Position numbers and translations under genes: made by a program. Positions 15,336 through 63,196 of a stretch of 64,000 nt of DNA are shown here, in pieces. The notes beneath the pieces were generated by a model. The model was not told the DNA's origin and searched no databases. It saw only the letters and a list, made by a program, of their open reading frames with translations. Source of the DNA: Haliotis rubra (lineage: Eukaryota); contig NW_025767346.1 in NCBI RefSeq assembly GCF_003918875.1, positions 2,728,001 to 2,792,000 of the forward strand. The letters run 5' to 3'. The first letter of the stretch is position 1, and every line of letters begins with the position of its first letter.

Positions 15336-18300
15336 ATGAACCCGTGTGATCTTCTTTGTCTTCTGATCTTCATTACCCTCCTCTCTGGAAGTAAGAACAG
15401 ACACCATGCTGCCAGAGAAACCTAGTTTTCAAACAAACACTCTTTTCATTGTAAAGCTGCCATTGTATTGGTGTAAATTATCTTCGCAAATGAAGATACA
15501 CATCTATTTGTGAGATATGTATCATGTAACAAACATAAATTCGCAATCGGCATCAAGTCGTACAGTGTTTTAACGGGGGCCCAGTATCCAAACTGGTTCA
15601 TGAATAAGCAGAAAGGCAATAATGTACTGTAAAATAATTTGCTTGTGTGGGTATATTCATTCTTGCAGATCCTCAATTGAGTCTGCTTTTCAAATATCAG
15701 ATGTTCCACTTGTGTGTGCAGGCCAGTGGTACTATTTTGTTGCATTGATCAATTCTCTATTGTCAGTGTGCTGTACAGAAGAATGCATATGTGTACATCA
15801 TGCATGTTGTCGGTACACCAATTAAAACGAAGGACCTTGTTTCCAGGTCAAACATCGCCAGCACCGCCCGATACGTCCGCAGGTGGTGAGTGTTACAAAA
15901 ATGTAAAATAAAGCAACGGAGTGAGTTAGTATAGTTTTACAACGCACTCAGCAATATTCCAGTTATATGGCGGCGGTCTTTAAATAATCGATTCTGGACC
16001 AGACAATCCATGAATCAACAGCCCGAGCATCGATCTGCGCAATTGGGGACCGATGACATGTGTCAACCAAGTCAGCAAGTCTGACCACCCGATCCCGTTA
16101 GTCGCCTCTTACGACAAGCATGGGTTACTGAAGATCAGTTCTAACCAGGACCTTCACGAGTCGAAAGCAGCGGAATTTACTTAAAGGTCACATGCAACCA
16201 AAAACACAAACATAATTAAAACACAATTATCACTTTTTCACGACATTTAATATACATTGCTGATTATGAAGAAACAAATAAACAAATTTAAAAGCGTACA
16301 ATCGCAAATCAAAAGTGCAATATTTTGTACTCGGGTTTTCTTCCCTCGAAACGAAGCACCCGGGAGGCAGAACCTAGTCAGAGCGGGTGGGTGTGCACTC
16401 AAGTGTAACGAAGTCTTTCATTGGGTGGTTCATTTGCCGATACGCTAAGGGCTCATTGTGTGTGTATATAGAGATGTTGGGTTTTGTAAATACATGCTCA
16501 TTTTTTCTGCATTTGCGTTCGATCCAATCAACAAATACTGGGATGGTGAACTACTGCGTGCGTCCAAGTACAAAGCAGGACTTGAATTTTGATAATTTGT
16601 TACTGTAAGGCCATACCGAAAGGTATCAGAATCTGCAAAGTTGTGTTTTGCGTTGCAAGTGACCTTTAATTATCCTGATTGCATAGATAACGCTGGTATG
16701 ACTGCTTACACATGTACCCCACATGTGATGCTGAAGCAGTTGCCCTGGAACATATTTCAGCCAACGGTGGCCATATACATTCGGACTGAATTTTTTCCTC
16801 TTTAACGTCATTCTTCTGTCGTGTCCTTCGCTCTGTTCTTGATTGTTGTTTCGGGTAAAATACAGTGTCATGGTTTGAGCATTAATATCATGGGTAGCTA
16901 TTCTCGGAACGTTCGTAGCCTTACAAACCTCTTAAGCCCATTCCTAACACATTGGCTACGATCAAAGTTAAGAATTCTTAGGGCTTCGAACGTTTCGGGA
17001 ATAAGGGCCCTGATCTCAACTCTACTTATATATATAGTATGACCAGAAATTATTGAGAATTAAGGAATAGGTTTAATTGGATTTCTAGTATAAACAACCT
17101 TGACCAGCTATCAAGTGCTTGGTTTCATTCAAGAGAGACAACTCCGTTAATCCTTTTTCATAAGTTTGTGAAGAGCTATCCCCCTTTTTTTACTTGCTAG
17201 CAGACGACACTTCCTCAGTATGGATGATTTAGAGAAGAGGAAGCTGATTTTAGAGTATTATAACAAGGACGTCAGATCAGCTAAAGTGATTTCAAGTAGA
17301 ACAGGCATCCCTTTGTCCACTGTTTATCGTTTGTTGAAACATATTGCAAATGGATATGGCATTGAGCACCAGGGAGGCGCAGGTAGGCCCAGAAAATTGA
17401 CTGTCGGTGACAGGAGGCGGCTTGGTATTCTTGTTTCTAAAAACAAACGAAGGACTTTAGAAAACTTAAGGCTGGATATGATTAATACAGAACCTGTGGC
17501 TGTATGTCAGGAGACAATTAGAACTGAGCTGCATGCAATGGGTTGGCAGAAAAGTCGAGGAATTCCATCACCGATCATGAAACCTGAACAAAAGGAGTGA
17601 AGGTTGAACTGGTGCTTACAGCATAGAAATTTTAACTGGGATAATGTGATTTTCTCAGATGAAAGTTCTGTGTGGCTGTTTCCTAATACACTGAAAGTCT
17701 GGACCAAACAAACTGAAAAACCTTTGTATCAGCGCCCAAAGTACAGTCCGAAATTTAACGTTTGGGGTGGCATATCTGTGTTAGGGACAACGCTCCTCTG
17801 TGTATTTGAAGGGAATATGAACAGTGAACGGTACACAGATATTCTCGAGGGACATTTACTTCCATCTGCTCACGTGTTCTAAGGAAAGTTTTGGATTTTC
17901 TAACAGGACAACGATCCAAAACATCGTTCAAAGCATTCACAGGCCTTGTTTCGGACCCAAAATATGACATTTTTAGATTGGCCAAGCTATAATCCTGACC
18001 TACATCCAGAAAATGTTTGGGGACTTATGAAGGAAAGTGTCAATACGAAAAATCTGACAAATATTGCTGAAATGAAAGAAGAGGTGGTCCGATATTGGGA
18101 CAGCATGGACCACGACTTTCTATCTTTTTTTTTGATCAGTAGTATGCCCCGCCGCATTGAAGCCTGCATTGCTGCCCATGGTGACTTGACAAAATACTAA
18201 CTGTTCACCTGTCTTTGAATCTGGAGTTATGTTCTGCTAATATTCACATTTACAATCTTTAAATTCTCAATAATTTCTGGTTGTACTGTATTATCTCCGT

Positions 18301-21150
18301 CAGTTGTTAGTGCATTCAGAAAACGTCTGTTTATTCCAGTACAATGTGTGATGCCCATTTCTGGTGTCCCCCCGCCGTGATATTGCTGGAATATTGCTAG
18401 AAGTGGCGTAAAATTAAACTCACTCACCCCGTTATCCCATGTAATGTTCATCAGACCTATGTGTGAAGTATCATCCGGCTGTACCCCTATCACACAGATA
18501 TATAAGGACGGTAAATGTCACAGAACTTGGGTATGTAAAGTAAAGTAATTAAGACTGGGTCTCGGCAGTGACAGAACGAATTAAGAAAGATCAGTGTAAA
18601 CAGTGCACAGTTACATGTAACTCCCAGTCTCCCATCCCTCGATCACTTTTAGTTTTAGTGATTTCTATAATGACGTCACTCTTGTAAGGCGTTACTACCA
18701 ACTAGGTCACGTTGAGGGGCAAGGGTATATGCGACCAGAACATTTCCAAATGTTCTATAAAGAGGGTGAGATGCTTATCCTTTAGTTCTTACACAAGAGT
18801 GTTTATGGACCGATATATTGACTATTTGTAGCTTACCTAAAACTCATAAATGAAGTCAGTTAGACATGACAGGATCCGCAGTTGTGGGTTCAAATCTTTT
18901 TAACATTCTTCCCACAGAAAGATAATATTATTTTACGCCGCATTGAAACAAACTCGGTTGTTCCTCCTATACAGAATAGCCTCAGCTCTTTGTCGTATTT
19001 TAACAGGGTTAATAGCATTATACTGATAATATATTTCTCCTCATTTTGCGATATTGTACAAACGTCATATATTTGTCCTTATATATGACATTTGTGATGT
19101 AGTCATCATTGTTAGGGTGTACTCAACGATTGGTACTTAAAGAGTTAAAAAATATAGCACATTCCTGAATTGTTAACGTTTCTTAATAAATTTAACGTGA
19201 TAAAAAGACAAGTTTGTAATGCAATTGAGCTACTGTGTACACAGACGAGGTAAATTTCATATTCAAGAAACATAAGTAGGTTTGTTAGTAATTGTTACAC
19301 ATTTTAAGGAATGCACAATATTTCAAATCACAGCACCACAGAAGCAGGAGTGGTTATAGGTGTGTGTATAATGCTGGTTGTGGATGGCGTCTTGCTGTAT
19401 GTGGCGTACCTCTTCAGGGACGAAATAGCAGACTGCATAGGTAAGTATGAAACAAATGGTTTTTTTTATTTAAACTTTTATTTCAAAGTAAATACAAACA
19501 AATATAGTTTATTGCAAGTTCCAGTGCGTCAAGAAATGAAAAATGACGAAATCTGTAGGAAATGGACCATTCTTTCAGGTTCTGAGAATTACAATGGATC
19601 TCATTTTGACATATACATAAAAAAATAGTATGTAAGTTGACACTTGATGCAATGACTTCCACAGTTGATAACATGTTGAGACAGCAGAATACGATGATGT
19701 TTAAGTCCTCCACAGATCATTAGCGGTCATTAGTTTCTCAATACATGGCAGCATGATACAGTACACGGGGGTGTCTCGGGATTTTATACTCCAGGCAGAA
19801 GCTGCACTCATCAGGGAAGACAACTTGGTGGCAGTTGTAGCCTCAGTTCACTCACTGACAGATGAAAAACTGGTGTTATACATAACGATCATCTCCTGAG
19901 TGTGGTCTACTCGTAGTTTGTGTATGACAGCGACGTTTGTAAACGCCTGGCGACAGTCTACATCAGCCATCCTTCTTCGTACTTTTGATAATTTCTTGCT
20001 CATAGTATTAATGAAACATTTCAATTTTTTCAGGAGTCAAGAAAGCCAGAAATACAAATGTGCCAGTAATGTCCAAGTAGGTGTACCTTTTACAATTAAT
20101 GCTTTGAGCCATTTATAACTACGAAACTAAAATATGAATGATTTATGAAATTTCGGTAATTAAAACTAGTTTGTTAGTAAAATACCTTTAATATATATGC
20201 AGCTGATTTTAAATGTCAGCAATATATGAACATCAGTTGGATACAATAATACAAATGATCAGGTTTAAATAATGAACAGATGCGTCAGTAATGTCCAAGT
20301 AGGTGCATTTTTCTACAATGAATGTTTTGAAGCCTTCATAAATATTTCATTAAAATGTGAATCATTTATGCTATTTCACAAATTGAAACTAGTTTCTTGA
20401 AGAGTTTGAACGCGTCCTAATTTTGTCGCCATTACACATATTCCCTCTCAACCATTACAGCATACAGTCTCCTCAGTCCACAGTGATCGCACCTGCCGAA
20501 ATCCAAAGACAAGGTGAGCGTTGGTCAACGTAAAAGATTACTATAGACGTTTCCGACTGAGGAAAGCTAAATGGTGAAATAAGAGAGTAAAACGGCTCCC
20601 TATATAAGACATGACTGCAGAGGATTGAGTGGTTAGACGCTGATGTGTCCAATTGTGCAGTGCTTAGCTTTCAGTCTCTGCTTAGTCCTTGTTTAGGATA
20701 GATGTTTTAGATGCCGTTGTGACAAGCGGAATGTTCCTAACAGTGGCATCGCTCACTCACTCACTCACTCACTCACTCACTCACTCATTCACCTACACAT
20801 CCACACACTCACTCACTCAACCAACCCACACACTCACTCACTCACCCAACCTACTCTCTCACTCACTCACTCAACCACACACTCACTCACTCACTCACTC
20901 ACTCACCCAACCCACTCACTCACTCACTCATTCACTTATAAATGTGTCTTCATATGTTCCGTAATACCTCGCTGTCCTTTCAAAGATAAATGTGTCGGAG
21001 TGGCAATGAAAACTGACTATATGTGTCTATGTAGGTGGAGGCGACGAGTACGAAGTACCAGTGGACAGAAATGATTACGAATCCCTACAGAGAGCAGCTG
21101 CTGACGTCCCCAACACTTATGAGAAGATACGGACATACCAGAATGTGTGA
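15336..21150 (+). CDS. Gene 1: Ig-less single-pass membrane protein (signal peptide, ~15-aa ectodomain, Asp-containing TM, four-tyrosine ITAM-like tail), ~134 aa
   Basis: Hand-spliced GT-AG exons: 15336-15390 (MNPCDLLCLLIFITLLSG), 15847-15885 (SQTSPAPPDTSAG), 19342-19440 (EAGVVIGVCIMLVVDGVLLYVAYLFRDEIADCI; an alternative in-frame acceptor lies at 19309), 20034-20076, 20461-20513, 21035-21150 (GGDEYEVPVDRNDYESLQRAAADVPNTYEKIRTYQNV*). Phases are compatible, total 405 nt, and each exon is homologous to an exon of genes A-C. Confidence 0.72.
15919..16162 (-). mobile_element. SINE-like retroposon with (TCAC)n tail (family 1)
   Basis: TSD aaagca(a/g)cgga; near-identical copies at 21181 and 27283. 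Confidence 0.85.
16185..16665. mobile_element. Non-autonomous DNA transposon with TTAA TSD (Kolobok-like)
   Basis: TTAA|AGGTCACATGCAAC ... GTTGCAAGTGACCT|TTAA. Confidence 0.8.
16892..17010. mobile_element. Small MITE
   Basis: Terminal inverted arms tattctcggaacgttcgtagcc / ggcttcgaacgtttcgggaata. Confidence 0.55.
17035..18288 (+). mobile_element. Tc1 (DD34E) transposon, full length, transposase inactivated
   Basis: TA TSD and ~27-bp TIRs (accagaaattattgagaatt). Transposase 17220-18200 has HTH, GRPRK, FSDES, VWGGIS, QDNDPKH and WPSYNPDLHPENVW motifs with internal stops. Confidence 0.93.
20752..20935. repeat. (TCAC)n microsatellite
   Basis: Direct inspection. Confidence 0.9.
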
Positions 21151-23439: not shown

Positions 23440-24050
23440 CGCGTGTGTATTACTTGTCCTGTATGACAAGCTACAACCTTGCGGCTGCTTTGTTTCTTTA
23501 ATGTATATGAAGGCACAATCCTGTGTATGCTTTGTTTCACCCTCATCCTGTATGTCAAGCTACAACCTTGCGCCTGCTTTTTTTTGTTTCTATAATGTAT
23601 ATGAAGCCATAATCCTGTGTATGCTTTGTTTCACTCTTGTCCTGTATGACAAGCTACAACCTTGCGGCTGCTTTCTTTTGTTTCTATAATGTATATGAAG
23701 GCACAATCCTGTGTATGCTTTGTTTCACTCTTGTCCTGTATGACAAGCTACAACCTTGCGGCTGCTTTCTTTTGTTTCTATAATGTATATGAAGGCACAA
23801 TCCTGTGTATGCTTTGTTTCACTCTTGTCCTGTATGACAAGCTACAACCTTGCGGCTGCTTTCTTTTGTTTCTATAATGTATATGAAGGCACAATCCTGT
23901 GTATGCTTTGTTTCACTCTTGTCCTGTATGACAAGCTACAACCTTGCGGCTGCTTTCTTTTGTTTCTATAATGTATATGAAGGCACAATCCTGTGTACGC
24001 TTTGTTTCACTCTTATCCTGTTTGTCAAGCTACAACCTTGCGGCTGCTTT
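23440..24050. repeat. 94-bp tandem repeat (dimer of a ~47-bp monomer); degenerate monomers extend ~23100-24300
   Basis: Identical ORF starts at 23662, 23756, 23850 and 23944. Confidence 0.92.
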
Positions 24051-24689
24051 GTTTTGTTCCTATCTTGTATGTCAAGCTACAATCTCGTGTATGCTTTGTT
24101 TCGTTCCTATCCCGTATGTCAAGCTACGGTCCTATGTATGCTTTGTCAAGCTACAATCCGGTGCATGCTTTGTTTTATTTCGTATCCTGTAGCAAGCTAC
24201 AATCCTGTACATGCTTTCCTTTGCCATAAACCTTATATTATGCAACAAATCTGTAATTCAAATATTTATACCTTTATCCTTGTTTCAACGTACTCACTTG
24301 GATATGCATTGTTTTGTTTTACGCCACGTTGTTAGTTTCCTGCGTCTATGGTCTCAGTGCCTCCAGAAATTCTGGACTTAATGGCACCCTAAACACAAAG
24401 GTCAGACTTGTTAACAACTCCCTGTGTTTACTGCAGGACCTGTTTTGCATCAAACCATATGAAATCGTCTCAACGTTCATCTGTTACATGACTGCATAAT
24501 TTTACCCCAACATACAATATTTAAAGTAAATAGGAGCTCCTTAGCCCATACTGGATAATTGTAAAACTTTCACGTGGTAACTGGAGTGACCTGAAAAAAA
24601 CATGTGTAACTGCATGTCGAACAGATTGTACGATTTCCGACTCCTCTTGTGCCGGCGACCGCAGGTGTATGTGCCACTTGAAAGGAATG

Positions 24690-28289: not shown

Positions 28290-29330
28290 TTGAATGAATT
28301 AATGAATTAAAGATTGAAGCAAATGAAAGAATAATTATCAATCTAGCAATCAATAAATCTTTCTTCTCTTTTTAACCACACATGGTGGTACAAGAGCATT
28401 AGATACATATTACACATAGATTTGATAGCATTGATGGAAGGTCCTTGCATAGTTTAGTTGCCGCGCAGCTTAAACACGGTTGTTGATAATAGATATAAAC
28501 TTTGATAATTTCTTAAGATTAGACAGTTTGTTGAATTTGAAGAATGATTTCATCTTATACAAATTAGCGAATGTACAATACTATGTTCCAAATAATGAGA
28601 TCTAATTTGAGTGAAGGCAGAACATCTAAATAGATAATGAAATTCACCAGCTGTGAATTACAAAGATGGCAGGGTCTATCATTTTGCGGGATGAGTTTCC
28701 AACGGCCAGTTTCAACTCGGAGATGATGATTATTTGTGCTAAATAACAGTAAAGGATAAGATATTTGTTTTGGTAATAAGAGGTATTTTTCAAGTGATGG
28801 GGAATCTTTCAGAAATCGATAATACAGTCCTTTGGAACTGCCTTTGATGTCACTGTGCCACCTTTGTAAATGCTGATCTTTAAGAGCATTTTCAACAGTA
28901 AGAGAAATATATTCAGTTGTACAGGTGAACGGGTTTTCATTACATAGCTGACCTGTCTAGATGTTATATACACCATACAGCACTTTCACCTCATGTGTTA
29001 AACAGCATGGCATTATTATATCCAGAATTGGGAGAAGAATGGCAGTATGTAATAAGGACTGGATCCAGAAGGAAAATATCAAAACAATGTACAAAATGTA
29101 ATACCTTTGCTAATGTTAACAATAACAATATCATCCTGAACTGTGGATATGCACTTTAATAGAGAGGAGTGGGAGAGAAAGAGATGAATTCTTTTTAGTT
29201 GTAATCGATAATCTTGATGCTGTATTGTAGGTCTAAATAGAGGTGATGGAAGAGCATGAGAAGCTAGCATTCTTTCTATATCTCAACCAAATTGATGAAG
29301 TAACATGATATCTTACTGTTAATAGTTTGT
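28290..29330 (-). mobile_element. LINE 3' fragment (a second family)
   Basis: Minus strand reads NNHHLRVETGRW...RPCHLC, typical of the LINE ORF2 C-terminus. A partial duplicate lies at ~105-470. Confidence 0.7.
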
Positions 29331-29366
29331 ATATACTGGGGAAAATGTCCCTACAATCTATATATG

Positions 29367-29410
<44 letters not shown>

Positions 29411-29483
29411 TGTTTTGAGTATTCTGTTACGTGATTATAAAATTACATGAGTATGATGTTTTAAGGATCTTGGGGCCTATCTG

Positions 29484-29631
29484 NNNNNNNNNNNNNNNNN
29501 NNNNNNNNNNNNNNNNNNNNNNNNNNNNNNNNNNNNNNNNNNNNNNNNNNNNNNNNNNNNNNNNNNNNNNNNNNNNNNNNNNNNNNNNNNNNNNNNNNNN
29601 NNNNNNNNNNNNNNNNNNNNNNNNNNNNNNN
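29484..29631. other. Assembly gap (148 N)
   Basis: N run; the paralogous site (~614-680) is a (ttcat)n-like tract. Confidence 0.99.
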
Positions 29632-29889
29632 CTTCATTTCATTCAATGCCTTCCTTGAGAGGTACTATCAGCTAGCGTTCCCAACGTGTTCGTACATGGC
29701 TTTGTCTATTTGCCAACATCTTTCTGTCGACAGGCGTGGCTACTGGTCATTATGCAATAAATGGTAAATCGGAAGGTTTAGTAACATTGTATTCGATAGC
29801 TTCATCATCGCTCTATTTACGTCTTGAACACCACATGTCACCAATGTAATAGGTGATATTTTGGGGTGAAACTGCAGAAATGTGCAATT

Positions 29890-30459: not shown

Positions 30460-30647
30460 TTATGCGTAGTAGTAAATGGGGTTGAGTGATGTTCCAGGAG
30501 CATAACCAAAGAAATCAAGATCCCAAGGATAGTATTTTTACAGTCGTGAGCCACGTGACTTCGGACAGCACGTGAAAGGCTTTGTATGTCAGAGTTACCA
30601 CTCTCTTTCAGTTACGCTTGTGAGCTAGGATATATAAGATAATATAA

Positions 30648-47635: not shown

Positions 47636-50600
47636 CTATATACTCTTTACTGATGTCATCTTTACCCTTATCAGTGGTATTCTTCCCTCCCTTTCTTAAC
47701 CTTCAATCTGCATCATTTTTCTACCTCCAACCATTGCTGCCCCAATAGTTTGATTACAATCCCACATCCACTGTTATGTTTCGTTTATGTTTCGTTTATG
47801 GTGGATGACATCCTTGTATTTGAGCTAGATAGGTTGAATTGTTAATGCCAGCATTCGCTTCATCGATCGGTATACATATATTCATCGTGAAGTATACAGA
47901 GGATACCTTAAGCTTCTTTGTTTGACGTACTTTCATGTGTTCTGTCCATCATACAGATGTTAAGGAAGGATACTTTGCACATGAGTTTGGCCTGTAAGTA
48001 GGGCCTGGAGATTCAGTGACTGAAGCACTGAAAAAGGATCAGTGTAAGGCAGTCTCATGGCAGAATGATAAAAATGAGATATTTGGACTGATCACTCGTT
48101 CCAGGACCTCATAATAGATATGTTAAGGGGTTAAGTTATATGCTACAAGAACATTTCCCAATATCTTTTAAAAAAGGAGGGTATAGTGTTTACAAGAGAT
48201 TTCGTATGGCCAGGTAAAATATAGTTAGGCTAAATGGACACAAGCGAAGGCCTTCACGTACCAGCACTTGGTCTAAATACGTCCTTTCAGAAGCTTCTGT
48301 AAAATGCTGGATTAGTCGGTGCAAACATGAGACAGTAACACATTCCTGACAACTAGATATTTCCCAAACACAATGATTTGATCTTCTACTGAAACTTAAC
48401 AAAATAAGGTATTATGGTCTCAGCATTTGGTTACAATAAATTAAACTGCCATTTAGCCATAGAAATACATTTGATGTTTCAAATGACAGCGACGTGTGTC
48501 CAAGAGAACCAGGAACCCTCTTTTGGTGTTGGAGTGGCTATAGGTGTGTGTGTGATGCTGGTTGTTGATGCCATCTGTCTTGGCTTGGCGTTCGTCTTCA
48601 GGAACAAACTAGCAGACTGCATATCAGGTAGGTACTTTACGTGATAATGTTTTTGGAATGTTTAAAAGTTTCAAGACCGAAGAAGGTATATACAGTAGTA
48701 ACAGATCGTAATCTATCTGTGGAAATCATGTAACATTTTGACAATTTCATCCGCATGACGATCCATCAACGAATTCTATCATGGAACTAAACTTGATGCT
48801 GTTACAGCTATGGGAACATCTGGTCCTGGATGAGAATGGTAATGTTGGCAAGCAACACTGTATTAAAACAATAACAAAGAATAATGTTATCCATGAAAGT
48901 TTGAATGATGGCAATGACCACAAAAGGATGATTAGACAAAGTCACAAATGGTGGGATAGCATTAATAATGTGTGACTACCTATATCTGCATTTCCCAAAA
49001 ATAAAGTAGGGAATAGCTTGCCATGCTGCTTGGACAAATAGGACTGTTGACCTGCTGCTAACCGAGTACATCACGCTAATGGTCGATTGATATCCGATCA
49101 TGTGGATAAGGTGACCAAAACATGTGCCACATCTTATTGTTGCTCAAAGTCTGTGACCATTGAAGCTAACTCCCCCTATCACTGTTGATCAACCCCAACA
49201 TACCGGCCATGCTCACAATGTAGCACTTACAACCGATCAAAAAGGACATATCAGGAACAGACCTGGCCATCGATAAAGTCCAGGATTCGTCAGTGACGAG
49301 TTCGTGTTACCACAGTTCTATGGTCCACAGGTGATGAGCTCTGCCAAGACAAGACAGTCGAGTCAATAAACTAGAAACAGTAAAGGGATGTTAGTAGCTC
49401 GGGGGAAGTTCCTGGTGATCTCCGTGGGGACTTTTCATGTGTTGTAGCCCCTACATGACATTTTATTTGTCCATTCGTCAATTTGATAATCGGTTGTTTC
49501 AGGACCACATACCGGCAATGCTCACAATGTAGCACTTACAACCGGTCAAAAAGGACATATCAGGAAACGAACCTGGCCATCAATAAACTGCAGGATTCGT
49601 CAGTGACGAGTTTTGGTTACCACAGTTAAATGGTCCACAGCTCTGCCCAGACAAGACAGTCGAGTCAATAAACTAGAAGCAGTAAAGGGATAACGGTAGC
49701 TCGGGGGAAGTTCCTGGTGATCTTTATGGGGACATTTCATGTGTGGTAGCCCCTGCATGTAATTTTATTTGTCCATTCATGAATCTGTTTTTCGGTTGTT
49801 TCAGGATCAAATGACACCAGTAACGCAGAGAATCCAGTATTCTCTAAGTAGGTTCACCTTTTCCAGAATTAATACTGCCAAACATTTATCACAAGGTAAC
49901 ACATATACTAAATGTAAACTGAAAATTGTTTCTGTATACTAAATGTAAACTGAAAATTGTTTCTGGACAAAGAGTTTTTAAATTTCATTGGTTTGTTTGC
50001 TTATTCATTCTGTAAAAAAAATGGCAGCATGATGGGCATTGCCATAACATTTATGCTTTCTCAACCACTACAGCATACAGGCTCCTGCCACAGTGGTCGC
50101 ACCTGGTGGAATCCAAACACAAGGTCAGATTTTGTCAATTTACATTACCACAATACAAGCGTCCAACACAAGAGAACCTAAATAGTGACACAAGAACATA
50201 TATGTTCTCGTTCTCCATGTTTGGTGTGCAAGCTAACAAATACTAAGTGGTCAGTGTCCATGGATCAGCTGACATCTTGTCAATATTTCCTGTAGGCATG
50301 AATCCATGCTTACTCTTTCAGTCATTGGTTTGTCAGATTTTAAGCCAGATTCGCTTAAAGGGATGAACCATCGCCGACGGTGAGTGTTCAAATAACGCTC
50401 ACACCATTGAGATAGACGTGTAGAACTATAAATTGCCATGGTAATTGAACTGTTGAAGAAGTGTGTGTCTGAAGGACATTGTTAACATACTCACTACACA
50501 CATTTCTTGTAGGTGTCGGTTACGAGTACGATGTTCCCGTGAACAGTTATGACTACGATGCCTTACAGAGAGGAGCTGCTGACGTCACCAACACTTATGA

Positions 50601-52780
50601 GAAGATACGAACATATGAGCATGTGTGAAACGAAAAGAATGACAGTGAAGATCAACTACTAAATAACAATCGCGTTTTCTTTTTGCTCAGACATCAAACG
50701 CTAACATCTAGACCCCCCTCAAAACCCGAATTAAAACTTTAAGGCATCACAGTTCAGCATCCAATCTCGAAATCAACTTTATCTGTCTATGTCCGTGGAC
50801 TGTTGTGGACTGTTGTCTAGTAGGACAAAATCAAAGCTCCTACTAACGACCTAAAAGACCTATAGTGAGAACAATCCAAAAGGGCATCCCCATCAAAAAA
50901 GACTCCAACCATCCATCAACTGTGACCAAGAGTATGACACATCTCCAGCTTACCTGTCACCAACTGACTCCAATCAGATATAATACTTCTGTGTCCAGCT
51001 GTATGTTTACACGACTGGCTTCATTTGCAAGGACCTAATTTGCCTTACATCTTCTGCAGTGTATACTGAACAGGCTAATGGAATCTATCGTTAAAACACT
51101 ACTTCATATCTGTATATATGCCTCCCTACACTACCTTATACATCTACTGCTTGATAACAGTGTTACCTTCTACACATCTACTTCCTCATTGTAAATAAAG
51201 AAGTTGTTCTTCCACATAAAATACCATTACATTAATAAGTGAGTTGATGTTGCTTCAGCTGAAAATTCAAATAGACAATACAAACAAAGTCAGAATTAGT
51301 ACTTTTTTGTATCTCATATACATTACTGTACACAGTTTTAACATAATTCTGTACAGATCTTTAGATATAAATAATTATATAATGCACAGACCTTATCTCA
51401 AGACAGAATTAGGACCCAGTGCTGTCTTAATCTCAGCTCCAGGACATGGGGCAGGCTCTTTGTTTCAACAGTAACACATGCAAAATTCAGTTCCTGTTTC
51501 TTCAAGACCCTGGCAAGTTTGGGGTCCTTATCATGATTCGTTAACCTTACCTATACTCTTATATTCAGCCTTGAACACATTGTATCATCGGAATATTACA
51601 GTCACACCTCTGCTATAATTCACAAAAATTAAATAACATTAACCTGATACTGAAGTTCACTTACATAACATGGACTGATTTGTAGAACAGTTTTCATGCT
51701 GGGTTTGTGCTCAACTGGTCTGAACATGGCTGATGGCCTGACCACCCTTTAATGTGTTGCTTTTTTCTTTTGTTTAACGCAATATTCCAGCTATATGGCG
51801 TCGCTTTGTAATTATGCTTTGAAGCATGGAGCAGAGAGTCGAGTGATCAACAGCATGAGCATATATCTATGCAAGTATGATACCATGGCATGACAAGGTG
51901 TCAACCTTGATGTTTGGAACGAATAAAGAGATGTAGGATACACACGTTTTACGACGAATGAATCCAAACTGATCAAGAACTGAAATATATAACATCTCAC
52001 TCAGCAGTATTTAGATATTCCAGACTGGACCAGACAATCCTGTGATCGATATTATGCATACACTGTTTAAGTAGAATGACATGCAATCAACCAAGTCAAC
52101 CAGCCTGGTCACCAAACCAATATCTGTCGCCTGCATAGATCAGTAAACGTTGCAACCAGTGATATACTTAGAATTCACATATTTACCACCAAACTCAGAG
52201 ATATGAGTGTGAGAATGCTCAACAATTAATCAGTTAGTTTTTCAAAAAAGAAATTCAATACGGTTTACGCGAAGTGTGTCAAACTGATATAATCTAGGAT
52301 CTTAACAACAGTTGCTGCTCGAAATTTCCTTTGCACAGAGACACATCTAAGATAATAAACATACACAAATGTTAAGTTTAATATACAACCCACCATTTTC
52401 TAAAGACGTAGGAAACAGTATATTGATGAAGCTATGATATTGCCGACGGTGGTATAGTGCTAATGGTTATCAGTTCGGTTGTACATTCAAACACAGACAT
52501 CTTTCTGTCCTGCTGATCTCCATACCTACCACTACACTTCTACAATTTCAAAACACACCGTTACCCTTCGCTGGACATGTTCCCCTCAATGCGATCTTAA
52601 CCCACATCTCCTGTACACTTTGAATCCAGTACCGTGTTCCTTGGACCCAAACAATAAATTGTAAAGTTATTTTTACTCCTGCGATAACACGGCTATAGCA
52701 CGTGTGTACAACAAGGAAGTATATTCTGCAGGTTGGATGTCTAATGGCGATTGACTTCATGTACAGGTATGTGTGTATGT

Positions 52781-54355
52781 ACGGAAGCGTAGTAGGGCCA
52801 CGGTGAAAATTTTTTTTCGTCTTACTATCTCCTACGTAGGACTTAGTATATCCTACGTAGCACATACTATCTCCTACGTAGGACTTAGTATCTCCTACGT
52901 ATCTCGGACTTAGTATCTCCTACGTAGGAGTTAGTATCTCCTAAGTGGGCATCTCCTACGTAGGACATAGTATCTCTTACGTAGGACTTAGTATCTCCTA
53001 CGTAGTACTTAATATTTCCTGTAGGAGATGATCGATATACGTTTATATGGATTAATCTGAAACGGTCGACTTAAAGCCCCAGACACGCACACAATCTCCT
53101 GTTTCACTGTTTTAGTCACTGTAAGAGTCTATAGTCATTCGTTTCATTCACTATTAGAGTCTACTGTCATGTGTTTCAATTTACTATTGGAGTCTACTGT
53201 TTCCTTCACTATTAGAGTCATGTGTTCAACTAATTGTTGCACATAAGTACTGTGTTGGACCGACTGTTATACTTTACTGCCTTGCGTTCAGTTTGCTCTA
53301 CTATTACGCGTTGCAGTTAGTTCACTGTTATATGTTGCTCTTTGTTACACTTTACTATTATGCATTGGATATTTCAGAGGTCGTTGCACATGAATCATAA
53401 TCTGCGTGTACAGACGTGTCTTAGACTATAGGTGGCAACCTATGTGTACGTATCCCCTTATATTTATACAAATAACTATAATGACAATTCTTTGCCTTTT
53501 TGAATTTCGTATTGTTTTACGCCGCACTCAACACTTGTCCACCCCAGTCAAGTCAACCTGTAAACAATTACGAATAAAACCGCAAACGAGCGTTGCATCC
53601 GATCCAACCTAGCCCCATCAAGACAAACAACAACTTGCGGAGGTCGTGTTATAACCCGAGTTTCATATCACAACCTCATCTCAACCATCCCACCCCCCTC
53701 TGTGTGCGTGTGTATCTGTGTGTTTGTGTGTGTGAATAGATGTATGTATGATAGATTTAACATAACCATACCCAAACCTCCATAACTGCAATTAGAACAG
53801 GGTCCACGTCACCCTAACGTAATACACACACAATAACACTGTACAGTACCACTGCGTTAGTGTCATGAATATTCACTGACTCACATTTCGATTATCTAAC
53901 GTCCTGCATAGCCAAACATTTCTCAACTTAATAACCATCCTTAAAAAGGAGATACTAAGTCCTACGTAGGAGATACTAAGTCCTACGTAGGAGATACTAA
54001 GTCCTACGTAGGAGATATTAAGTCCTACGTAGGAGATACTAAGTCCTACGTAGGAGATAGTATGTCCTACGTAGGAGATATTAAGTCCTACGTAGGAGAT
54101 ACTAAGTCCTACGTAGGAGATACTAAGTCCTACGTAGGAGATAGTATGTCCTACGTAGGAGATATTAAGTCCTACGTAGGAGATACTAAGTCCTACGTAG
54201 GAGATACTAAGTCCTACGTAGGAGATAGTATGTCCTACGTAGGAGATACTAAGTCCTACGTAGGAGATACTAAGTCCTACGTAGGATATAGTATGTCCTA
54301 CGTAGGAGACAGTGACCCAAAAAAAATTTTCACCGTGGCCCTACTACGCTTCGTA
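52781..54355. mobile_element. Non-autonomous foldback-type DNA transposon with 21-bp subterminal arrays
   Basis: TIRs tacg(g)aagcgtagtagggccacggtgaaaattttttt. Inverted arrays of gagatactaagtcctacgtag at 52825-53025 and 53948-54310. Absent from the paralogous sites. Confidence 0.88.
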
Positions 54356-55902: not shown

Positions 55903-58900
55903 ATGAACCCGTGCGATCCTTATTGTCTTCTGATCTTTATGACCTTTCTCTCTGGAAGTAAGTACACTCAACGTGCTGCCAGACAAATAAGGTTTTCGTG
56001 GGGGGGTGCAACCAGTATTAAGCGGTACAGTGGATTAACTGACGGGGGTAGGGATCAACTCATTTGTGTTTAAGAAGCAAGTAATTATTTTGCCTGTGTG
56101 AATATTTTTACTCCTGTTCATCTTCAAAGAAAGTCGAATCTACTTCTCGAATGCCACATGTTCCACTTGGGTGTTTCGAAACTGAAATACAGTACTAACA
56201 CGTCACTGACCTAGAGGTTATGTGAAATCAGTCACTATATTCGTACATCTTCACAAAGTGTCACCTGTGAAGCACAGAATACAGAAACCATGAATATGTA
56301 GTACCCGTGATGGCGCAGTGATATGTTCCTATGCTGTATAGTATTGGGTGCAAATATTTATATGAATCAATCAATACTCATTTGTATTGAATTAATATGA
56401 ATTCAAGTACTTGTTTTTCAGCCACTGGGGCAAGCCTAACCGCATCACCAAGCAAAAAAACAATCAGGGGCAGTAACCCAACATCTCAGTTGACTGTAAG
56501 TTGCAGGCCAAATGCACCTGGGATAACACAGGTGTTTACCATAGAGATCGGCAAGAAGTCCTCTACTGGCTCTGATCAGCCTATAATACGATTGACCAAC
56601 ACAGATACGTCAGTACAAGTAGTGGACACAAGTCTACAACAGCGGATGACAGCCTCAGGTTCTATCAGTGGAGCAAGAGGCAGTATACAGTTCATCCTGA
56701 CAAACCTGAGATGTGCTGATGCTGCTTCTACATACTACTGCACAACAATATACTTGACGGGGTCATCTGGAAGTGATGAGGCAACTACCAACATTACAGC
56801 TAGAAGTGCGTAATGTTAATATTTACTCCGACTGAATCTGAAACGTTTTGAATTCTTGAGATACACACACACATACTCATACACACATCCTATATGTGTG
56901 TGTGTATATGTACACTATATTGTATGTTTGTGTATATATAGATATTTGACATTTAAGTTGTTTCACTGCATTATTTAGTGTTATCTCTGCACACGTGTCT
57001 TGTATGTACTTGCATTAGTTACAATTTAAACAATCTAATCAGGTGCTATTCATGCAAATCAAATAGATATTTATAAAACCTTTAGACAGTTCCTATTACA
57101 TCTGAAGTATTTAAAATTGTTACTATATTGGCAATATTGTCGTTCTTCTTCTCCTATTTCTGGAGTGTTGACTTACAATGTCTATATACTTTCTTACAGC
57201 TTACCCAGAGCAGATAGAGATGTTCCCATCTCCTGACAGGCTGCATTATGACGATGGTCAGCTCATCTCATGTGAGCGTTCAGTCAGAAAATTGACAAAA
57301 CAAGACCGACTCTGAGCACTAATTGAAGGTTTCATTGAAGCAAACTAAAGTTTACTAAAATCACCGTAAAATAAGGTGAGATGAGTACGGTTGCCGGGGT
57401 CGTTACAACAGACACACAACATAGTTCATATGTTGAACACACTTGAAAGGTCCACAATGACTGGCTAAGTCAGTATCTGGTGTAACCGCCTCGCACTTGG
57501 ACCAGACGTCTGATTCTCTGTTGGGGGATCTGCTGCCACTCATCATGCAATGCATGGTTCAATTCCTGACGGTTCTGAACTAGAGGATCCCTTGCTCTCA
57601 CCCTACGTCCCAAATTGTCCCACAAATGCTCAATAGGATTCATGTCTGGACTTCTGGCTGGCCATGGTAGTGTCTCAATGGCGTTGTGTTGGATATGCTG
57701 AACAACAGCTCGAGCACGATTTGGTCTTACATTATCGTCCATGAAGACTGGATGTGTGGCGAGAGCATGGTTATCGAAATAAGGCACTACGGCACCGTCC
57801 AGGATCAAGTTCGGGTACCTCTGTCCATTCAATGGACTATGATGAGGTCAAGTTTACGATCATAGGAACAACGTCCCCACACCATGACGGATCCACCCTC
57901 AGAACTCGTGCCCTCCCGCCTGTATGATGCAGCAAAATCGGCTTTCATCGGACCAATGGATCCTTTCCATGTCCTCAGGTTCCAGCAAGCACGTGCTTGG
58001 CACCAGGATAAATGGGCATGGTGGTACAGATTTGTGAGGAGTGGACGTCTGATTGGTCGTCTTGCTCTCAATCCTGCAGAATGTAGGCGTCGTCTGATGG
58101 TGCTGATGGACACACTGTTGTATGGATGCCATCTATGTCGCAGCTGTGTACAAGTGGACATTGGGCTTCGTCTGGCATGGCGTACAAAAGCCATCTTCCA
58201 TGTCATTGTTTCTTTCTGGGACGTCCAGACCTCGGTGCATCCTTCACTTCACCGGTAGCAGTATGCTTACCTATCAGCCTGCTGATGACAGTACGATTAA
58301 TGTCCAGTTGTGCTCCAATAGCATGACATGACATACCCGTCTGGTGCATACCAATACTTTGCCATTATTGGTTCAGAGGCACTGGACGCTTGGACATTTC
58401 ACTGGTTCGTCAAAAAAAAAGCTTAATTTCTGCCTACAATCACATTTTAGCTGTCTGCCAACATAACATACGCCAAAGGGGGCTATGTGCATACTGCATT
58501 TATAGCTTAAGGCAAGCATGCACGTGCAGCTCGGAACATCTGTGGTATTATGTTTACAGATGGTGTCGTATATTACATATGTACGTGTAGTGTAAAAAGA
58601 ACGAAAATCATATTTCTACTTTGACTTTTGGTGGTGTGATACTTTTGACAAGGTGTATAGATGACTTTAAAAGTATACCTGGTTCAAATTTATGCAAAAC
58701 GGGAATTCATATCTCCGATTTCTCGTGAAAATGACATTTATTCTATTCCATGAAGAGCTTCATGTTCTAGTCAAATGTATTCAACTTTTCATACCAGGAC
58801 GACAAACATTCAAACAGGAAGGCTACAATTACAATGGGATGAAATCGTTATCTATATTAGGCCTATATTTGAAGAGTGTTATGCAGATGAACCTTATATA

Positions 58901-61900
58901 TCAGACGGGTACACCATACATGTTAGCAGGACAGCAACAGAAGGAAAGGATCAGGACTACCTTCTAACTGCTGTATTTGTTTCAGGTCAACAACCACCAG
59001 GGGAAACATCTACTTCCGAAACGCCCACAAGTGGTGAGTTTTGTATAACAGAAAGAAAGCAAGAGTGAGTTAACATCAACAATCATACTAACACATTCAC
59101 CATGGCACATATTTCAGACAACGGTGGCTATACACATTACTGACATTTTTGTGTCAAAGTGTCGTCTTCAGACTAAAAACGACATTGCCATTCTTTAATG
59201 GCATTCGTGCATTTCTTATTGGACCCAAACGTTAGTGATTGTTCCTGATCCAATATAGTGCCTCTTTAAATACCAAGGCGACAAACATTCAAATAGGAAG
59301 GCTACTATTACAATGATAAGAAATCGTTGTTGACCCTGCTTAAATCAAGTCTATGTTCAAAGTGTGCTACACACATAAACTTATATGTACACAGGGTACA
59401 TCTTGCATGTCAGCAGGACAACAACAGAAGCAAAGTTTCAGCTTTACTTACTAACTGTCATATCAGTTTTTGCAGGTGAACAACCGCCACCACCTCCACC
59501 TCCTTCAGAAAAGCCTGCATGTGGTGAGTTTTGTATAGCTGAACGGAAGCAACAATCAATTCAGGTAATCGTCAGGAATGTGAACTTTGGAAATGTCTTG
59601 CCTATTTTTTTTTACAGGATATTTATAAAGCGCACATATCCACGCAACAAATGCATGCTCATTTACTATATACTCTTTAATGACGTCATATTTACCCTTA
59701 TCAGTGGTATTCTTCCATCGCTTTCTGAGCCTTCAATCTGCATCATTGTTGTTCCTCCAACCATTGCTGCCCCAATAGTGTGATTACAATCTCACATACG
59801 CTGTTATGTTTCGTTTGCTTTAGTTATGGTTGATGACACTCCTGTATTTGAGGTAGATAGGCTGAATTGTTAATGGTAGCATTTGCTTAATCGATCGGTA
59901 AACATATATTCATCGGAAGGTATACAGAGGGTACTTAAGCTTCTTTGGTTGACGTACTATCATGTGTTCTGTCCATCATACAGATGTTAAGAAGGATACT
60001 TTGCACATGAGTTTGGCCTGTAAGTAACTGAGTCAGGGCCTGAGAAAGATCAGTGTAAGGCAGTCTCATGGCAGAAATGATAAAAATGGGATATAGGGAC
60101 TGATCACTCATTCCAGGACCTCATAATAGATATGTTAAGGGGTTGAGTTATGTGCTACAAGAACATTTCCAAATATCTTTTAAAAAAGGAGGGTATAGTG
60201 TTTACAAGAGATTTGGTATGGCCCTGGTGAATTATAGTTAGGCTGAATGAACACAAGCGAAGACCTTCACGTACCTGCACTTGGTCTAAATACGTCCTTT
60301 CAGAAGCTTCTGTAAAATGCTGGATCAGTCAGTGCAAACATGAGACAGTAACACATTCCTCACAACTAGGTATTACCAAAACACAATGATTTTATCTTAT
60401 ACTGAAACTTAACAAAACAATGTATTATAGTCACAATATTTGGTTACAATAAATTAAACTGCCATGCAGTCATAGAAATACATTTTATGTTTCAAATGAC
60501 AGCGGCATGTGTCCAAGAGAACCAGGATACCTCTCTTGTTGTTGGAGTGGCTATAGGTGTGAATGTCATGCTGGTTGTTGATGCCATCTGTCTGGGTTTG
60601 GCGTTCGTCTTCAGGGACAAACTAGCAAACTGCATATCAGGTAGGTACTTTACGTGATAATGTTTTGGGAATGTTTAAATGTCTCAAGACAGAAGAAGGT
60701 ATGTATAGTTGTAACAGTTCTTAATCTCTCTGTCAAAGTCATAAAGCATTTCACATGTATATCCATCATAGACAGGAATTCTACAATGGAGCTAACCGTT
60801 ATGCTGTTAAAACTATGAATTCTTGTTCTGGATGAGAATAGAAATGTTGCTATGGAACACGGCATAAAACAGCAAAGAAGAAATAAAGTTAATCAAGCGA
60901 TGAGAGTTTGAATGTTGGCAATGACCACCAAGGGTCATAAGGCAAAGTCGCAAATGGTCGGATGGCATAAACAATGTGTGACCACATTTATTGGCACTTC
61001 CCGAAGAGACAGTTGGGAATAGCTAGCCACTGGAGGAGTAGGACTGTTGACCTGTTGCAGGTTTTCTGACCGAAGTGGTCACCCCAATGTTCGACTGATT
61101 CACGATCGGGCGAATAAGAAGACAATGCATGCACGAGACCACATTTTATTGCTGGAAGATGACCACTGAACATCACGGGAGTCTTGCATTGACTCCTCCC
61201 ACAATGATTTTCAGTGTTGGTAATACGCCAGGGATGAGGAGTTTGGATGGAGGTACTACTTCTGTTCATTAATCTGATATTTGGTTGTTTCAGGAGACAA
61301 GAACAGCGGTAACGCAGAGATGTCAGCATTGTCAACGTAGGTCAATCTGTTCCAGAATTAATTCTTTGAAACATTCATCACAATGTAACAAACATCCTAA
61401 CTGTTAATTGAAAAGATGTTTATAGTGAAAGAGTGCTTTAAGTGTATAGGCTTGTGTTACGGTTTAGAAATTACCGAGATAAAAGGCTTGTGAGTCCCCT
61501 TTAAACCAGAACATATGATAAACCAGACAAGTTTCTGATATTCAATAATATATTGAATAAACAATTAACAAGGTTAAAATGAATGACAGTTCAGATTTCC
61601 AATACAATACAATTGAGTCACAAATCTAAAATATTGGGTCAGCAACCACCCTTGTATACATATCATACAGTTCTTGAGAACTCAAGCAAAAACTACTCCA
61701 CAACACAATCATTTAGAGATTTCTAACAGCTTCCACGGCATCCGCCGGAAGCAAATCAACAACAACGCGCTGAGTTCAAATCCACACTCAGCGCTTTAAA
61801 TTTTAGTGATCCATAATGACTACAAGTTATTTAATATGACTTACTTAACAAAAACACATCCTCAAAACACTTGTAGGTTTCTTAATTTTGTAACAATTAA

Positions 61901-63196
61901 GACCAAAATGTTCTGCAGCATAATATTCATTGCCATAAACTTTATCCATTTCTCAACCACTGCAGCATACAGGCTCCTGCCACAGTGGTCGCACCTGTTG
62001 GAATCCAAACACCAGGTCAGATTTTGTCAATGTACATTATCACTGTGCAAGTGTCTAACAGAGCATAACCAAAATAGTGACAAATTAGATGCTTGGTTGG
62101 CATTTTAGAAGATGCTGTTTGATGAACATAAAGACTTTTCAGGATTTCATCTTCTTTTATTCTTTGATACAACGTTTCAGGACCTTTCCGGTCGCATCAT
62201 CAGGTAAAACTAATTAACGGTTAACTGTGCCCGTGACGTCACAATGATATGACGACGTAATACATGACAACGCAATACATCTCGACGTCATAATGGATAA
62301 GTCTAACACAGCTAACAGGAATACATGTTGTTATGAATATATAAAAGATTGTTTACTACAAAATTATTGGATTAATTTATAAATGTACAGATACCTATGT
62401 ATAAAATGTAAAGTACTTACTGTGTATACATGGAAATTATGATTTATACATGGGGACAGTATATTTATGAAACAGTGATGAAGGTAGGATATTGTCTTAT
62501 TTTATGAACACACCCTGATCCCTGTTTATTGTTGGTTTTGTACGTTTGATGAAGATAGCTTCGGTCAACTGTGTGTACAATGTGACTTTGGTGACCTTGA
62601 CATTGGTCAGACAGGCAGACCAGTAGCTTCACGTGTGAAAGAACCAAAAACTAAAGTCGACAAATCGGATCTAATATCTGCAGTTTCTCAACACATTGTG
62701 AATAATCCTAATCATGAAATTGACTGGGAAACAAGTCCTCGCAAAATACATTAGTGACTGGAACAGGCCCCGAAACTTTGTATCAAAGAATAGAAGAAGA
62801 TGAAATCCAGATGAAATTCTTTATGTTCACTAAATAGTGACACAAGAACATAGATGCGTCTCGTTCTCCATGCTTGGTGTAAAAGCTGACGAATACTAAC
62901 TGGTGAGTCTCAATGAATCAGCTGACATCGTGTCACTGTTTCATGTTGGCATGAATCTAGGCTTCCTCTTTCAGTCATTGATCTAGCAATGTTGAAGCCA
63001 GATTCGCGTCAAGGTGAACCATCGCCGACTGTGTCTGGTACAACATTGTCAGTGTACTTACTATTCCCATTTTGTCACAGGTGGAGGCGACGAGTACGAA
63101 GTACCGGTTGACAGGAGTGACTACGATGCCCTACAGAGAGAAGCTGTTGACGTCCCCAACACTTACGAGACGATACGAACATACCAGAATGTGTGA
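55903..63196 (+). CDS. Gene C: Ig receptor paralogue with intact V domain, Ig2 exon truncated by Tc1, intact TM and tyrosine tail
   Basis: Exons: 55903-55957, 56422-56805 (V), 57200-57271 (Ig2 remnant), 58986-59033, 59476-59523, 60503-60640 (TM VGVAIGVNVMLVVDAICLGLAFVF), 61294-61336, 61966-62015, 63081-63196 (GGDEYEVPVDRSDYDALQREAVDVPNTYETIRTYQNV*). Confidence 0.72.
57272..58655 (-). mobile_element. Tc1 (DD34E) transposon, degenerate, one TIR lost
   Basis: WSDESRF, GGSVMVWG, FMDDNVRP, WPARSPDMNPIEHLW and GGYTRY motifs. Surviving end ...cttttgacaaggtg|TA. Confidence 0.92.
61455..61869. mobile_element. Solo LTR (Gypsy-like)
   Basis: TGTTA...AAACA termini, 4-bp TSD CTTG, absent from the gene A and B introns. 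Confidence 0.72.
62083..62831. mobile_element. Penelope-like element fragment with inverted terminal repeat
   Basis: GIY-YIG-type C-terminus SAVSQHIVNNPNHEIDWE (~62680-62730). Inverted arms at 62124-62185 and 62765-62829. Flanking duplication aaatagtgaca. Confidence 0.68.

Follow-up and report, generated by a model that had tools for sequence, protein, structure and literature searches.

The window analysed here, 64,000 nt of the Haliotis rubra genome (assembly GCF_003918875.1, contig NW_025767346.1, positions 2,728,001-2,792,000, forward strand), holds four plus-strand paralogues of a receptor-like gene: gene 1 (15336-21150), A (35869-40860), B (44409-50628) and C (55903-63196). [quoted passage not shown] The family to which these genes belong is real, restricted to the genus and previously undescribed in the literature that we found.

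Four tandem copies of one exon plan

A motif scan of the window gave four occurrences of the TM motif MLVVD on the plus strand, each in a homologous TM context, and self-comparison of the window resolved tandem units at about 13.8-21.2, 34.2-42.8, 42.8-54.3 and 54.4-64 kb. Exon boundaries were derived from conserved AG/GT sites and from the alignment of the paralogues, and were recovered with conserved phases in all copies (Table 1). These results bear out the claim that the four paralogues share an exon plan. A signal exon of 55 nt, aligned across all four copies and ending in phase 1, is followed by a V-type Ig exon (Ig1; 384 nt, 375 nt in B), a second Ig exon (Ig2; 351 nt), stalk exons of 48 nt (one in A, two each in B and C), a TM exon with a mid-membrane Asp (138 nt), two cytoplasmic exons (cyt1, 43 nt; cyt2, 50 nt, or 53 nt in gene 1) and the last exon. 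All exons from Ig1 to TM are in phase 1-1, so that the derived boundaries agree with what had been said of the ectodomain exons. The stalk is made of 16-residue Pro/Thr exons and contains no folded domain. Independent support for the exon models comes from four relatives described below (P0004, P0020, P0021 and P0022), since their junctions are identical to the derived ones.

Every copy in the window carries a defect. According to the first-pass annotation, gene 1 had the tail and no Ig domain, A had two Ig domains without the tandem tyrosine motif, and B and C each had one intact Ig domain with the tail. This description stands for A, B and C and for the Ig-less state of gene 1, but in gene 1 the stalk exon (15847-15885) and a 19-nt deletion in the TM exon had been overlooked. 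No Ig exons are present in gene 1, and a Tc1/mariner remnant occupies their place, as it does at the same position in two H. rubra loci, L001 (the orthologous locus) and L002. In comparison with the H. rubra orthologue, the deletion lies between CAGGAG and TGGTT, with a short direct repeat at its borders. Because the TM exon is without these 19 nt, the frame of the conserved splice form is shifted and reading ends early, after ..PQKQEWL. Use of an AG located 25 nt upstream (exon start 19309) would bring the sequence back into frame; this acceptor is unsupported, and it would be out of frame in H. rubra.

Gene A is interrupted within its last exon by one additional base, in a stretch that reads GGAAAT. 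Reading leaves the frame after YEVPIDR and meets a stop at 40815-40817; in the other frame the remainder, ..LQRGAADVPNTYEKIRTYQHV, which contains the YxxL..YEKI..YQHV part, stays open as far as 40860. As read from the sequence, gene A could at most give a product with a truncated tail. In gene B, leaving out the Ig2 pseudo-exon gives an open frame of 290 amino acids (aa) with a single V domain and a complete tail. Gene C without its Ig2 remnant likewise has an open single-V-domain frame of 293 aa with a complete tail, and the phase-1 GT at the junction of Ig2 and the Tc1 element would permit an in-frame mini-exon. B and C could thus give at most single-V-domain products, by skipping the damaged Ig2. 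The intron that follows the TM exon of gene B also contains a 302-bp x 2 tandem array (49198-49806).

Table 1. Coordinates of the gene exons, remnants and other features in the window
Feature	Position	Strand	Basis or remark
Dead remnant 1: partial cyt1 (2205-2264), partial cyt2 (3829-3928)	2205-3928	+	no TM or last exon
Gene 1 signal exon	15336-15390	+	ATG, hydrophobic core, GTAAG donor; matches N-terminus of H. rubra P0049
Gene 1 stalk exon, Pro/Thr-rich, 39 nt, phase 1-1	15847-15885	+	AG/GT; translation equals P0049 stalk
Tc1/mariner transposase remnant, long intron of gene 1	17172-18197	+	HTH_Tnp_Tc3_2, DDE_3, sub-threshold
Gene 1 TM exon, MLVVD, conserved acceptor	19334-19440	+	19-nt deletion versus H. 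rubra orthologue
Gene 1 cyt1	20034-20076	+	AG/GT block conserved in all four copies
Gene 1 cyt2	20461-20513	+	aligned conserved exon
Gene 1 last exon: YEVP, YESL-x10-YEKI, YQNV, stop	21035-21150	+	tail motifs
Assembly gap, intergenic	29484-29631	.	flanks colinear with 103-614 / 669-1895
Dead remnant 2: partial cyt1 (31605-31664), partial cyt2 (33429-33528)	31605-33528	+	in segment duplicated from 103-6500
Gene A signal exon	35869-35923	+	paralogue alignment
Gene A Ig1 exon, predicted V-set fold	36538-36921	+	splice sites; AlphaFold2 pLDDT 93.9; Foldseek V-domain matches, E 1e-8
Gene A Ig2 exon, predicted constant/I-type Ig fold	37260-37610	+	splice sites; AlphaFold2 pLDDT 79.9; Foldseek
Gene A stalk exon, 48 nt	38002-38049	+	splice sites
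Gene A TM exon, MLVVD	38804-38941	+	paralogue alignment
Gene A cyt1	40056-40098	+	conserved block
Gene A cyt2	40307-40356	+	conserved block
Gene A last exon, +1 nt frameshift	40747-40863	+	extra base near 40782
Gene B signal exon	44409-44463	+	paralogue alignment
Gene B Ig1 exon, most divergent copy	45019-45393	+	alignment; dN/dS 0.67-0.96; long branch
Gene B Ig2 pseudo-exon, splice sites intact	45906-46256	+	in-frame TAA at 45974-45976
Gene B stalk exon 1	46625-46672	+	
Gene B stalk exon 2	47080-47127	+	
Gene B TM exon, MLVVD	48490-48627	+	
Gene B cyt1	49805-49847	+	
Gene B cyt2	50074-50123	+	
Gene B last exon: YDVP, YDAL-x10-YEKI, YEHV	50513-50628	+	
Gene C signal exon	55903-55957	+	paralogue alignment
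Gene C Ig1 exon	56422-56805	+	
Gene C Ig2 remnant, first 72 nt	57200-57271	+	phase-1 GT at insertion boundary
Tc1/mariner element in place of the remaining gene C Ig2	57272-58672	-	colinearity break; DDE_3 E 1.3e-8, HTH_Tnp_Tc3_2 E 2.3e-13
Gene C stalk exon 1	58986-59033	+	
Gene C stalk exon 2	59476-59523	+	
Gene C TM exon, MLVVD and Asn in helix	60503-60640	+	
Gene C cyt1	61294-61336	+	
Gene C cyt2	61966-62015	+	
Gene C last exon: YEVP, YDAL-x10-YETI, YQNV	63081-63196	+	

Predicted Ig folds and the tyrosine tail

Sequence methods gave weak answers on both ectodomain exons. For Ig1, the best match to Pfam V-set (PF07686) was that of copy B (18.8 bits, for a cut-off of 26), with none for A and C, and a search of PDB sequences found a weak similarity to antibody V regions (E 0.003). 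For Ig2, matches to Pfam C2-set_2 were all sub-threshold and the PDB sequence search returned nothing. The folds therefore required structure prediction, and AlphaFold2 models were built on alignments of the window sequences with those of relatives. The Ig1 model (predicted local distance difference test score, pLDDT, 93.9; predicted template modelling score, pTM, 0.87) has nine strands forming a two-sheet Ig sandwich with the extra strands of V domains, and its closest structures in Foldseek searches of PDB and Swiss-Prot are the V domains of VHH, VH, VL, CRIg and PD-1 (E 1e-8 to 1e-6). Cys27, Cys106 and the stretch D99..Y104-Y105-C106 (D-x-A-x-x-Y-Y-C) are conserved, and an Ile stands at the place of the canonical core Trp. 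The Ig2 model (pLDDT 79.9), in which C26, W47 and C100 are conserved, matches IL-18Rbeta, VEGFR2 D3, the constant domains of IgM and IgD, the Ig domain of tapasin and D2 of Roughest (Rst). On these models, Ig1 is predicted to be a V-set fold and Ig2 a constant/I-type Ig fold, in line with the earlier labels of V-like Ig and second Ig.

In intact family members, the TM helix presents a small-residue face (GVGVAIG) together with the mid-membrane Asp, which suggests self-association through the membrane or association with a partner. The intact tail has about 68 residues and four conserved tyrosines, in the motifs YE[VI]P, Y[DE]xL, YEKI and a C-terminal YQN[VMI]. In the window, we found [DY]EY[ED]VP, Y[ED]xL, ten residues, YE[KT]I and, at the C-terminus, YQNV (YEHV in B). 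The motifs YE/DVP, YxxL-x10-YxxI and YQNV/YEHV reported earlier are thus all present, and to this we add that the four tyrosine motifs lie within the last exon. The pair formed by YESL or YDAL and YEKI or YETI occurs in gene 1, B, C and all relatives, with a spacer of 10 in every family member, and tyrosines 2-4 are invariant among the aligned relatives. The consensus spacer of an ITAM has been given as x(6-9) (PMC9546547). The description of the tail as ITAM-like is right as to the two Yxx[L/I] motifs but not as to their spacing, and because a spacer of 10 exceeds x(6-9), the tail, judged on its motifs, is ITAM-like rather than an ITAM.

Pairwise ratios of non-synonymous to synonymous substitution (dN/dS) differ among the exons. 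They range from 0.25 to 0.38 in the last exon for all pairs; the tyrosine tail is constrained. In Ig1 they are 0.34 for A-C, 0.67 for A-B and 0.96 for B-C, and in Ig2 0.26 for A-B. Copy B alone has evolved fast, a pattern which fits relaxed constraint or decay as well as it fits positive selection.

A Haliotis-restricted family and its turnover

A profile of the three Ig1 exons, run exhaustively against 1.84 billion representative proteins, gave 19 matches in total. All the close ones are from Haliotis (H. asinina, H. cracherodii, H. rubra and H. rufescens) and, as far as the matches could be attributed, no cnidarian protein is among the 19. The relatives are mostly annotated as 'uncharacterized protein' and otherwise carry automatic 'mucin-like' or 'DAN4-like' labels, none of them informative; the expectation that annotation would leave the locus uncharacterised was correct, and no paper on the abalone family was found. 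The full architecture, identical in exon order and junctions, is present in P0004 (H. asinina, 424 aa) and in P0020-P0022 (H. cracherodii, H. rubra and H. rufescens), the intact relatives being 390-432 aa long. Together, the tandem units, the Ig folds and the Haliotis-only close matches confirm that this is a clustered, lineage-restricted family of the Ig superfamily (IgSF). Among H. rubra protein models, none is more than 90% identical to A, B or C, the best being 82%. An unplaced H. rubra contig (L005, QXJH01002651.1) was considered as the orthologous locus of A, B and C and rejected; it is paralogous, with 80-88% identity.

The same ectodomain is found on two other chassis, one with FN3 domains (P0003, P0024-P0029 and P0032-33) and one with a plain hydrophobic TM helix and a long acidic tail (P0005, P0030, P0031 and P0034). 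A basic TM residue and an immunoreceptor tyrosine-based inhibitory motif (ITIM) are absent from both, and the TM helix of the second is purely hydrophobic. More generally, no Lys or Arg was found in the TM helix of the family members retrieved and, among the retrieved proteins, the ITIM pattern [S/I/V/L]xYxx[I/V/L] fits no tyrosine of the tail or of the alternative acidic tail (P0005 group). With neither an ITIM form nor a basic-TM partner among these proteins, the terms 'paired receptor' and 'allorecognition' are therefore unsupported. When the TM-plus-tail module was sought in combination with other ectodomains, the same Haliotis proteins alone were recovered.

Further relatives were noted. 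Remote Ig1-Ig2 pairs with 23-29% identity occur in the bivalves Mizuhopecten yessoensis (P0015) and Saccostrea cucullata (P0017 and P0018), where each protein contains it in two or three tandem repeats. This suggests that the two-domain module is older and mollusc-wide. P0009 (H. rubra) and P0014 (H. asinina) join an Ig1-like V domain to some 140 Cys-rich residues at the C-terminus, a domain without a significant Pfam match, and constitute another uncharacterised architecture on the same V domain. P0039-P0041, isoforms of H. rubra LOC124259319, contain the family Ig2, after which the reading frame of the TM and cyt1 exons is shifted: at the C-terminus they match the window TM and cyt1 exons translated out of frame, which suggests another decayed or mis-modelled family member annotated as protein-coding. 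Finally, in a tight tandem of H. rufescens (L003, JALGQA010000018.1) each gene contains two to three pieces resembling Ig2, and the contig L005 mentioned above, also a tight tandem, has a 5-kb repeat unit Ig2-stalk-Ig1. As these duplicated and broken Ig2 exons show, exon-level turnover is general to the family.

The origin of gene 1 can be traced in part. Its orthologue, H. rubra LOC124256787 (P0049), is intact and encodes 143 aa, with a signal, a 20-residue ectodomain that includes the stalk and is devoid of Cys, an Asp-bearing TM helix and a four-tyrosine tail. The locus of this gene, L001, is syntenic with window positions 5185-27007 at 95-97% nucleotide identity and has no Ig exons either. 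Its full-length H. rubra neighbour LOC124256786 (P0021, locus L002) matches gene 1 at 90-94% in the stalk, the Tc1 element, the TM exon and the tail. A query with TM and tail found three short proteins (121-143 aa) from three species. Their interpretation as a conserved Ig-less adaptor was rejected for H. rufescens and H. asinina, where signal, Ig1 and Ig2 exons lie directly upstream and the short models are 3' fragments of Ig-bearing genes. Given the match of L002 to gene 1 and these fragments in the other species, the Ig-less gene is a young exon-loss derivative of a tandem duplicate (of LOC124256786), confined to the H. rubra lineage and already broken in the window.

Birth-and-death turnover, as proposed earlier, is borne out by lesions in every copy, by remnants and by insertions of transposable elements. 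The four copies and two remnants carry independent lesions, tandem copies with a broken Ig2 are present in H. rufescens and H. rubra loci, and the Ig-less copy is restricted to the H. rubra lineage. The two dead remnants that had been reported were both recovered, as 3' pieces made exclusively of partial cyt1 and cyt2.

The assembly gap affects no gene model. It lies 8.3 kb past the gene 1 stop and 6.2 kb before the gene A ATG, its flanks align in order and orientation with the paralogous segment in the self-comparison, and no family exon adjoins it, the nearest being the cyt1 remnant at 31605.

The remainder of the window contains repeats and mobile elements. Segments 103-6500 and 28977-34275 are duplicates over about 5-6 kb, with 82-93% identity, and hold the cyt1 and cyt2 remnants. 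Both contain a 23-bp minisatellite (2339-2778 and 31743-32481), and the first also has a 54-bp array of 32 units (4343-6084). Minus-strand open reading frames at 1050-1505 and 30010-30459 are paralogous and probably derived from a transposable element. A 7.25-kb insertion (6515-13765), richer in G+C than its surroundings, is bounded by 232-bp inverted repeats (6515-6743 versus 13765-13534, 92.7% identical) and has coding sequence for an rve-type integrase (minus strand, 6956-7732) along with several long open reading frames without Pfam matches. It has the appearance of a Maverick/Polinton-like or similar self-integrating element and is also present at the orthologous H. rubra site. Other arrays lie between gene 1 and A (94-bp x 7, 23453-24127) and between B and C (21-bp x 17, 53947-54309, with an inverted partial copy at 52784-53029).

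Possible function and relation to known receptors

The locus is probably an array in birth-and-death decay, whose tandem genes belong to a family of type I IgSF membrane proteins restricted to Haliotis. The gene structure, the Ig folds, the range of the family, the conserved tail and the lesions were observed as described above, and from them we infer signalling, a ligand and an immune role. In such a receptor, binding of a ligand by the V domain would cluster the molecules, possibly with the help of TM self-association, and Src-type kinases might then phosphorylate the clustered tails. The YxxL-x10-YxxI pair could dock the tandem SH2 domains of a Syk/Shark-type kinase, YxN a Grb2-type SH2, and YxxP an SH2 of the Crk/Nck/Abl type. 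By established SH2 specificities, YxxP and YxN are general adaptor motifs, and YEKI resembles the optimum of the Src SH2.

Several observations weigh against this interpretation. The tandem tyrosine motif falls outside canonical ITAM spacing, and Pfam finds neither an ITAM nor an adaptor family in the tail. The TM Asp, said earlier to be kept in every helix, is kept in all four window copies but is not universal in the family, being replaced by Ile in H. rufescens P0022 and by Gly in H. asinina P0051. The term 'diversified' fared poorly. Ig1 paralogues and orthologues are 70-84% identical, and their variability is not focused on the loops: per-site entropy over 20 Haliotis sequences is 0.65 in strands and 0.59 in loops, the F-G hairpin being somewhat more variable than the remainder of the domain. 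The Ig1 tree is star-like, with 13 of 15 forks open and B on a long branch, and does not settle whether exons were shuffled between chassis types. Finally, since no window copy is free of damage, the locus itself may be non-functional.

This last point leads to the strongest of the alternatives, that the whole array is a graveyard of four pseudogenes derived from a functional gene outside the window, with nothing expressed as protein. The likely source would then be the orthologue of LOC124256786 (H. rubra), some 29 kb upstream from the gene 1 orthologue. We consider this possible, if somewhat unlikely. It would account for a disabling change in each copy (the 19-nt deletion in gene 1, the extra nucleotide in A, the TAA in B and the Tc1 element in C), for the two further 3' remnants, for the nearly neutral Ig1 of copy B and for the lack of an H. 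rubra protein model above 90% identity to A, B or C. However, the frames of B and C run uninterrupted for 290 and 293 aa when the phase 1-1 Ig2 is skipped, and the last exons of gene 1, B and C show purifying selection. Moreover, the defect of A amounts to a single extra base and the deletion in gene 1 is its sole disabling difference from an intact orthologue; both indels could be recent, polymorphic or assembly errors.

It is unlikely that the family belongs with adhesion or morphogenetic IgSF proteins of the nephrin/Kirrel/CADM type, with a tail recruiting Nck, Crk or Grb2 and no part in immunity or allorecognition. The structural neighbours of Ig2 do include Roughest D1-D2, CADM3 and the Ig domains of VEGFR, the same ectodomain is joined to FN3 in paralogues, YxxP and YxN would suit general adaptors, and the diversity of Ig1 is modest. 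Nevertheless, adhesion IgSFs are usually conserved across phyla, whereas genus restriction, tandem turnover with pseudogenes and an N-terminal V-set are more typical of immune-type multigene families.

The poorest fit is the proposal that gene 1, together with LOC124256787, is an adaptor similar to DAP12 or FcR-gamma, pairing through its TM Asp with ligand-binding chains in a receptor-plus-adaptor locus. The intact P0049 and its Ig-free locus speak for this proposal and, like DAP12, FcR-gamma and CD3-zeta, gene 1 and P0049 combine a signal, a very short ectodomain, a TM Asp and paired YxxL/I. They differ in having no ectodomain Cys for disulphide dimerisation, a non-canonical spacer of 10 and no Pfam match: P0049 matches no Pfam family, DAP12, FcR-gamma and ITAM families included, and Pfam and ESM-Atlas searches together returned just generic small single-pass membrane proteins below a useful score. 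The Ig-less form occurs only in the H. rubra lineage, the short models of H. rufescens and H. asinina being 3' fragments, and arose by deletion from a LOC124256786 duplicate; gene 1 is frameshifted in the window, and no basic-TM partner was found among family members. As the Ig-less gene is young, lineage-confined and broken in the window, the adaptor proposal is weakened, and we regard it as very unlikely. That the Ig-less gene is a free-standing adaptor, associating via its TM Asp with other membrane receptors, and that the window copy is functional because the acceptor at 19309 makes up for the 19-nt deletion, is more doubtful still. If true, the receptor/adaptor split that forms the basis of immunoreceptor signalling in vertebrates would have arisen here independently, recently and in a traceable way.

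If the locus is indeed a decaying array of type I IgSF receptors, its place among known systems differs from that first suggested. KIR, LILR, NITR, CD300 and TREM comprise inhibitory forms with ITIMs and activating forms in which the tail is short and an acidic adaptor is recruited through a basic TM residue. They share with the abalone genes the organisation in tandem, fast-turnover IgSF clusters with copy-specific loss of domains and tails, but the abalone receptors have an acidic TM residue and carry the motif themselves, and there was no ITIM form among the proteins retrieved. Rather than NITR, CD300 and TREM, which had been named as the pattern, the closest vertebrate architecture is that of CD3 epsilon/gamma/delta and CD79a/b, with an Ig ectodomain, an acidic TM residue and tandem YxxL/I on one chain. 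The CD3 and CD79 chains are invariant and partner distinct antigen-binding chains that have basic TM residues, whereas no such partner is known for the abalone family; in addition, the abalone spacing is non-canonical and homology is undetectable beyond the Ig fold.

Among invertebrates, the Alr genes of Hydractinia also form a clustered IgSF family with a V-set first domain and with many putative genes and pseudogenes (PMC9546547). They have one exon per domain and, in some members, ITAM-type tails, and their role in allorecognition is genetically proven (PMC9546547). They differ from the abalone genes in a membrane-proximal Fn3-like fold, where abalone has unfolded Pro/Thr stalk exons, and in the ITIMs of some members; the sequences are unrelated, nothing ties the abalone genes to allorecognition, and abalones are solitary. 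Draper of Drosophila, in which a Src kinase phosphorylates tyrosines of the tail and the Syk-family kinase Shark binds them (PMC4503800), is another invertebrate tyrosine-tail receptor and indicates that such motifs work outside vertebrates, but it has an EGF-repeat ectodomain and an NPxY motif, and is a conserved single gene rather than a cluster. The oyster receptor CgIgR is an Ig receptor with an ITAM that dimerises, recruits Syk and activates ERK and phagocytosis (PMC6994640). Both it and the abalone proteins are type I receptors of molluscs, have Ig domains outside the cell and a single TM helix, and bear a tandem-tyrosine motif in the tail. CgIgR has five Ig domains and a 'classical' ITAM, in contrast to the V-set plus one Ig, 10-residue spacer, TM Asp, YxxP and YxN of the abalone family. 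No sequence relationship between the two was detected, the close family of the Ig1 profile being abalone only. Judged by this analogy, CgIgR is the closest described counterpart and would be the best functional model.

In vertebrates, how tandem-tyrosine Ig receptors signal is well understood; in other animals such signalling is, to our knowledge, scarcely documented, the cases being CgIgR, Draper and Hydractinia Alr. The value of the present locus is limited by the non-canonical motif, by a function that is wholly inferred and by the damage in every window copy. The abalone family would nonetheless add a second, independent mollusc case, in which one chain combines a V-set domain with an acidic TM residue and a conserved four-tyrosine tail. 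Its natural variants (no Ig, one Ig, two Ig, no tail motif) could serve as controls in structure-function studies, and the locus may be a candidate for disease-resistance variation in a farmed animal.

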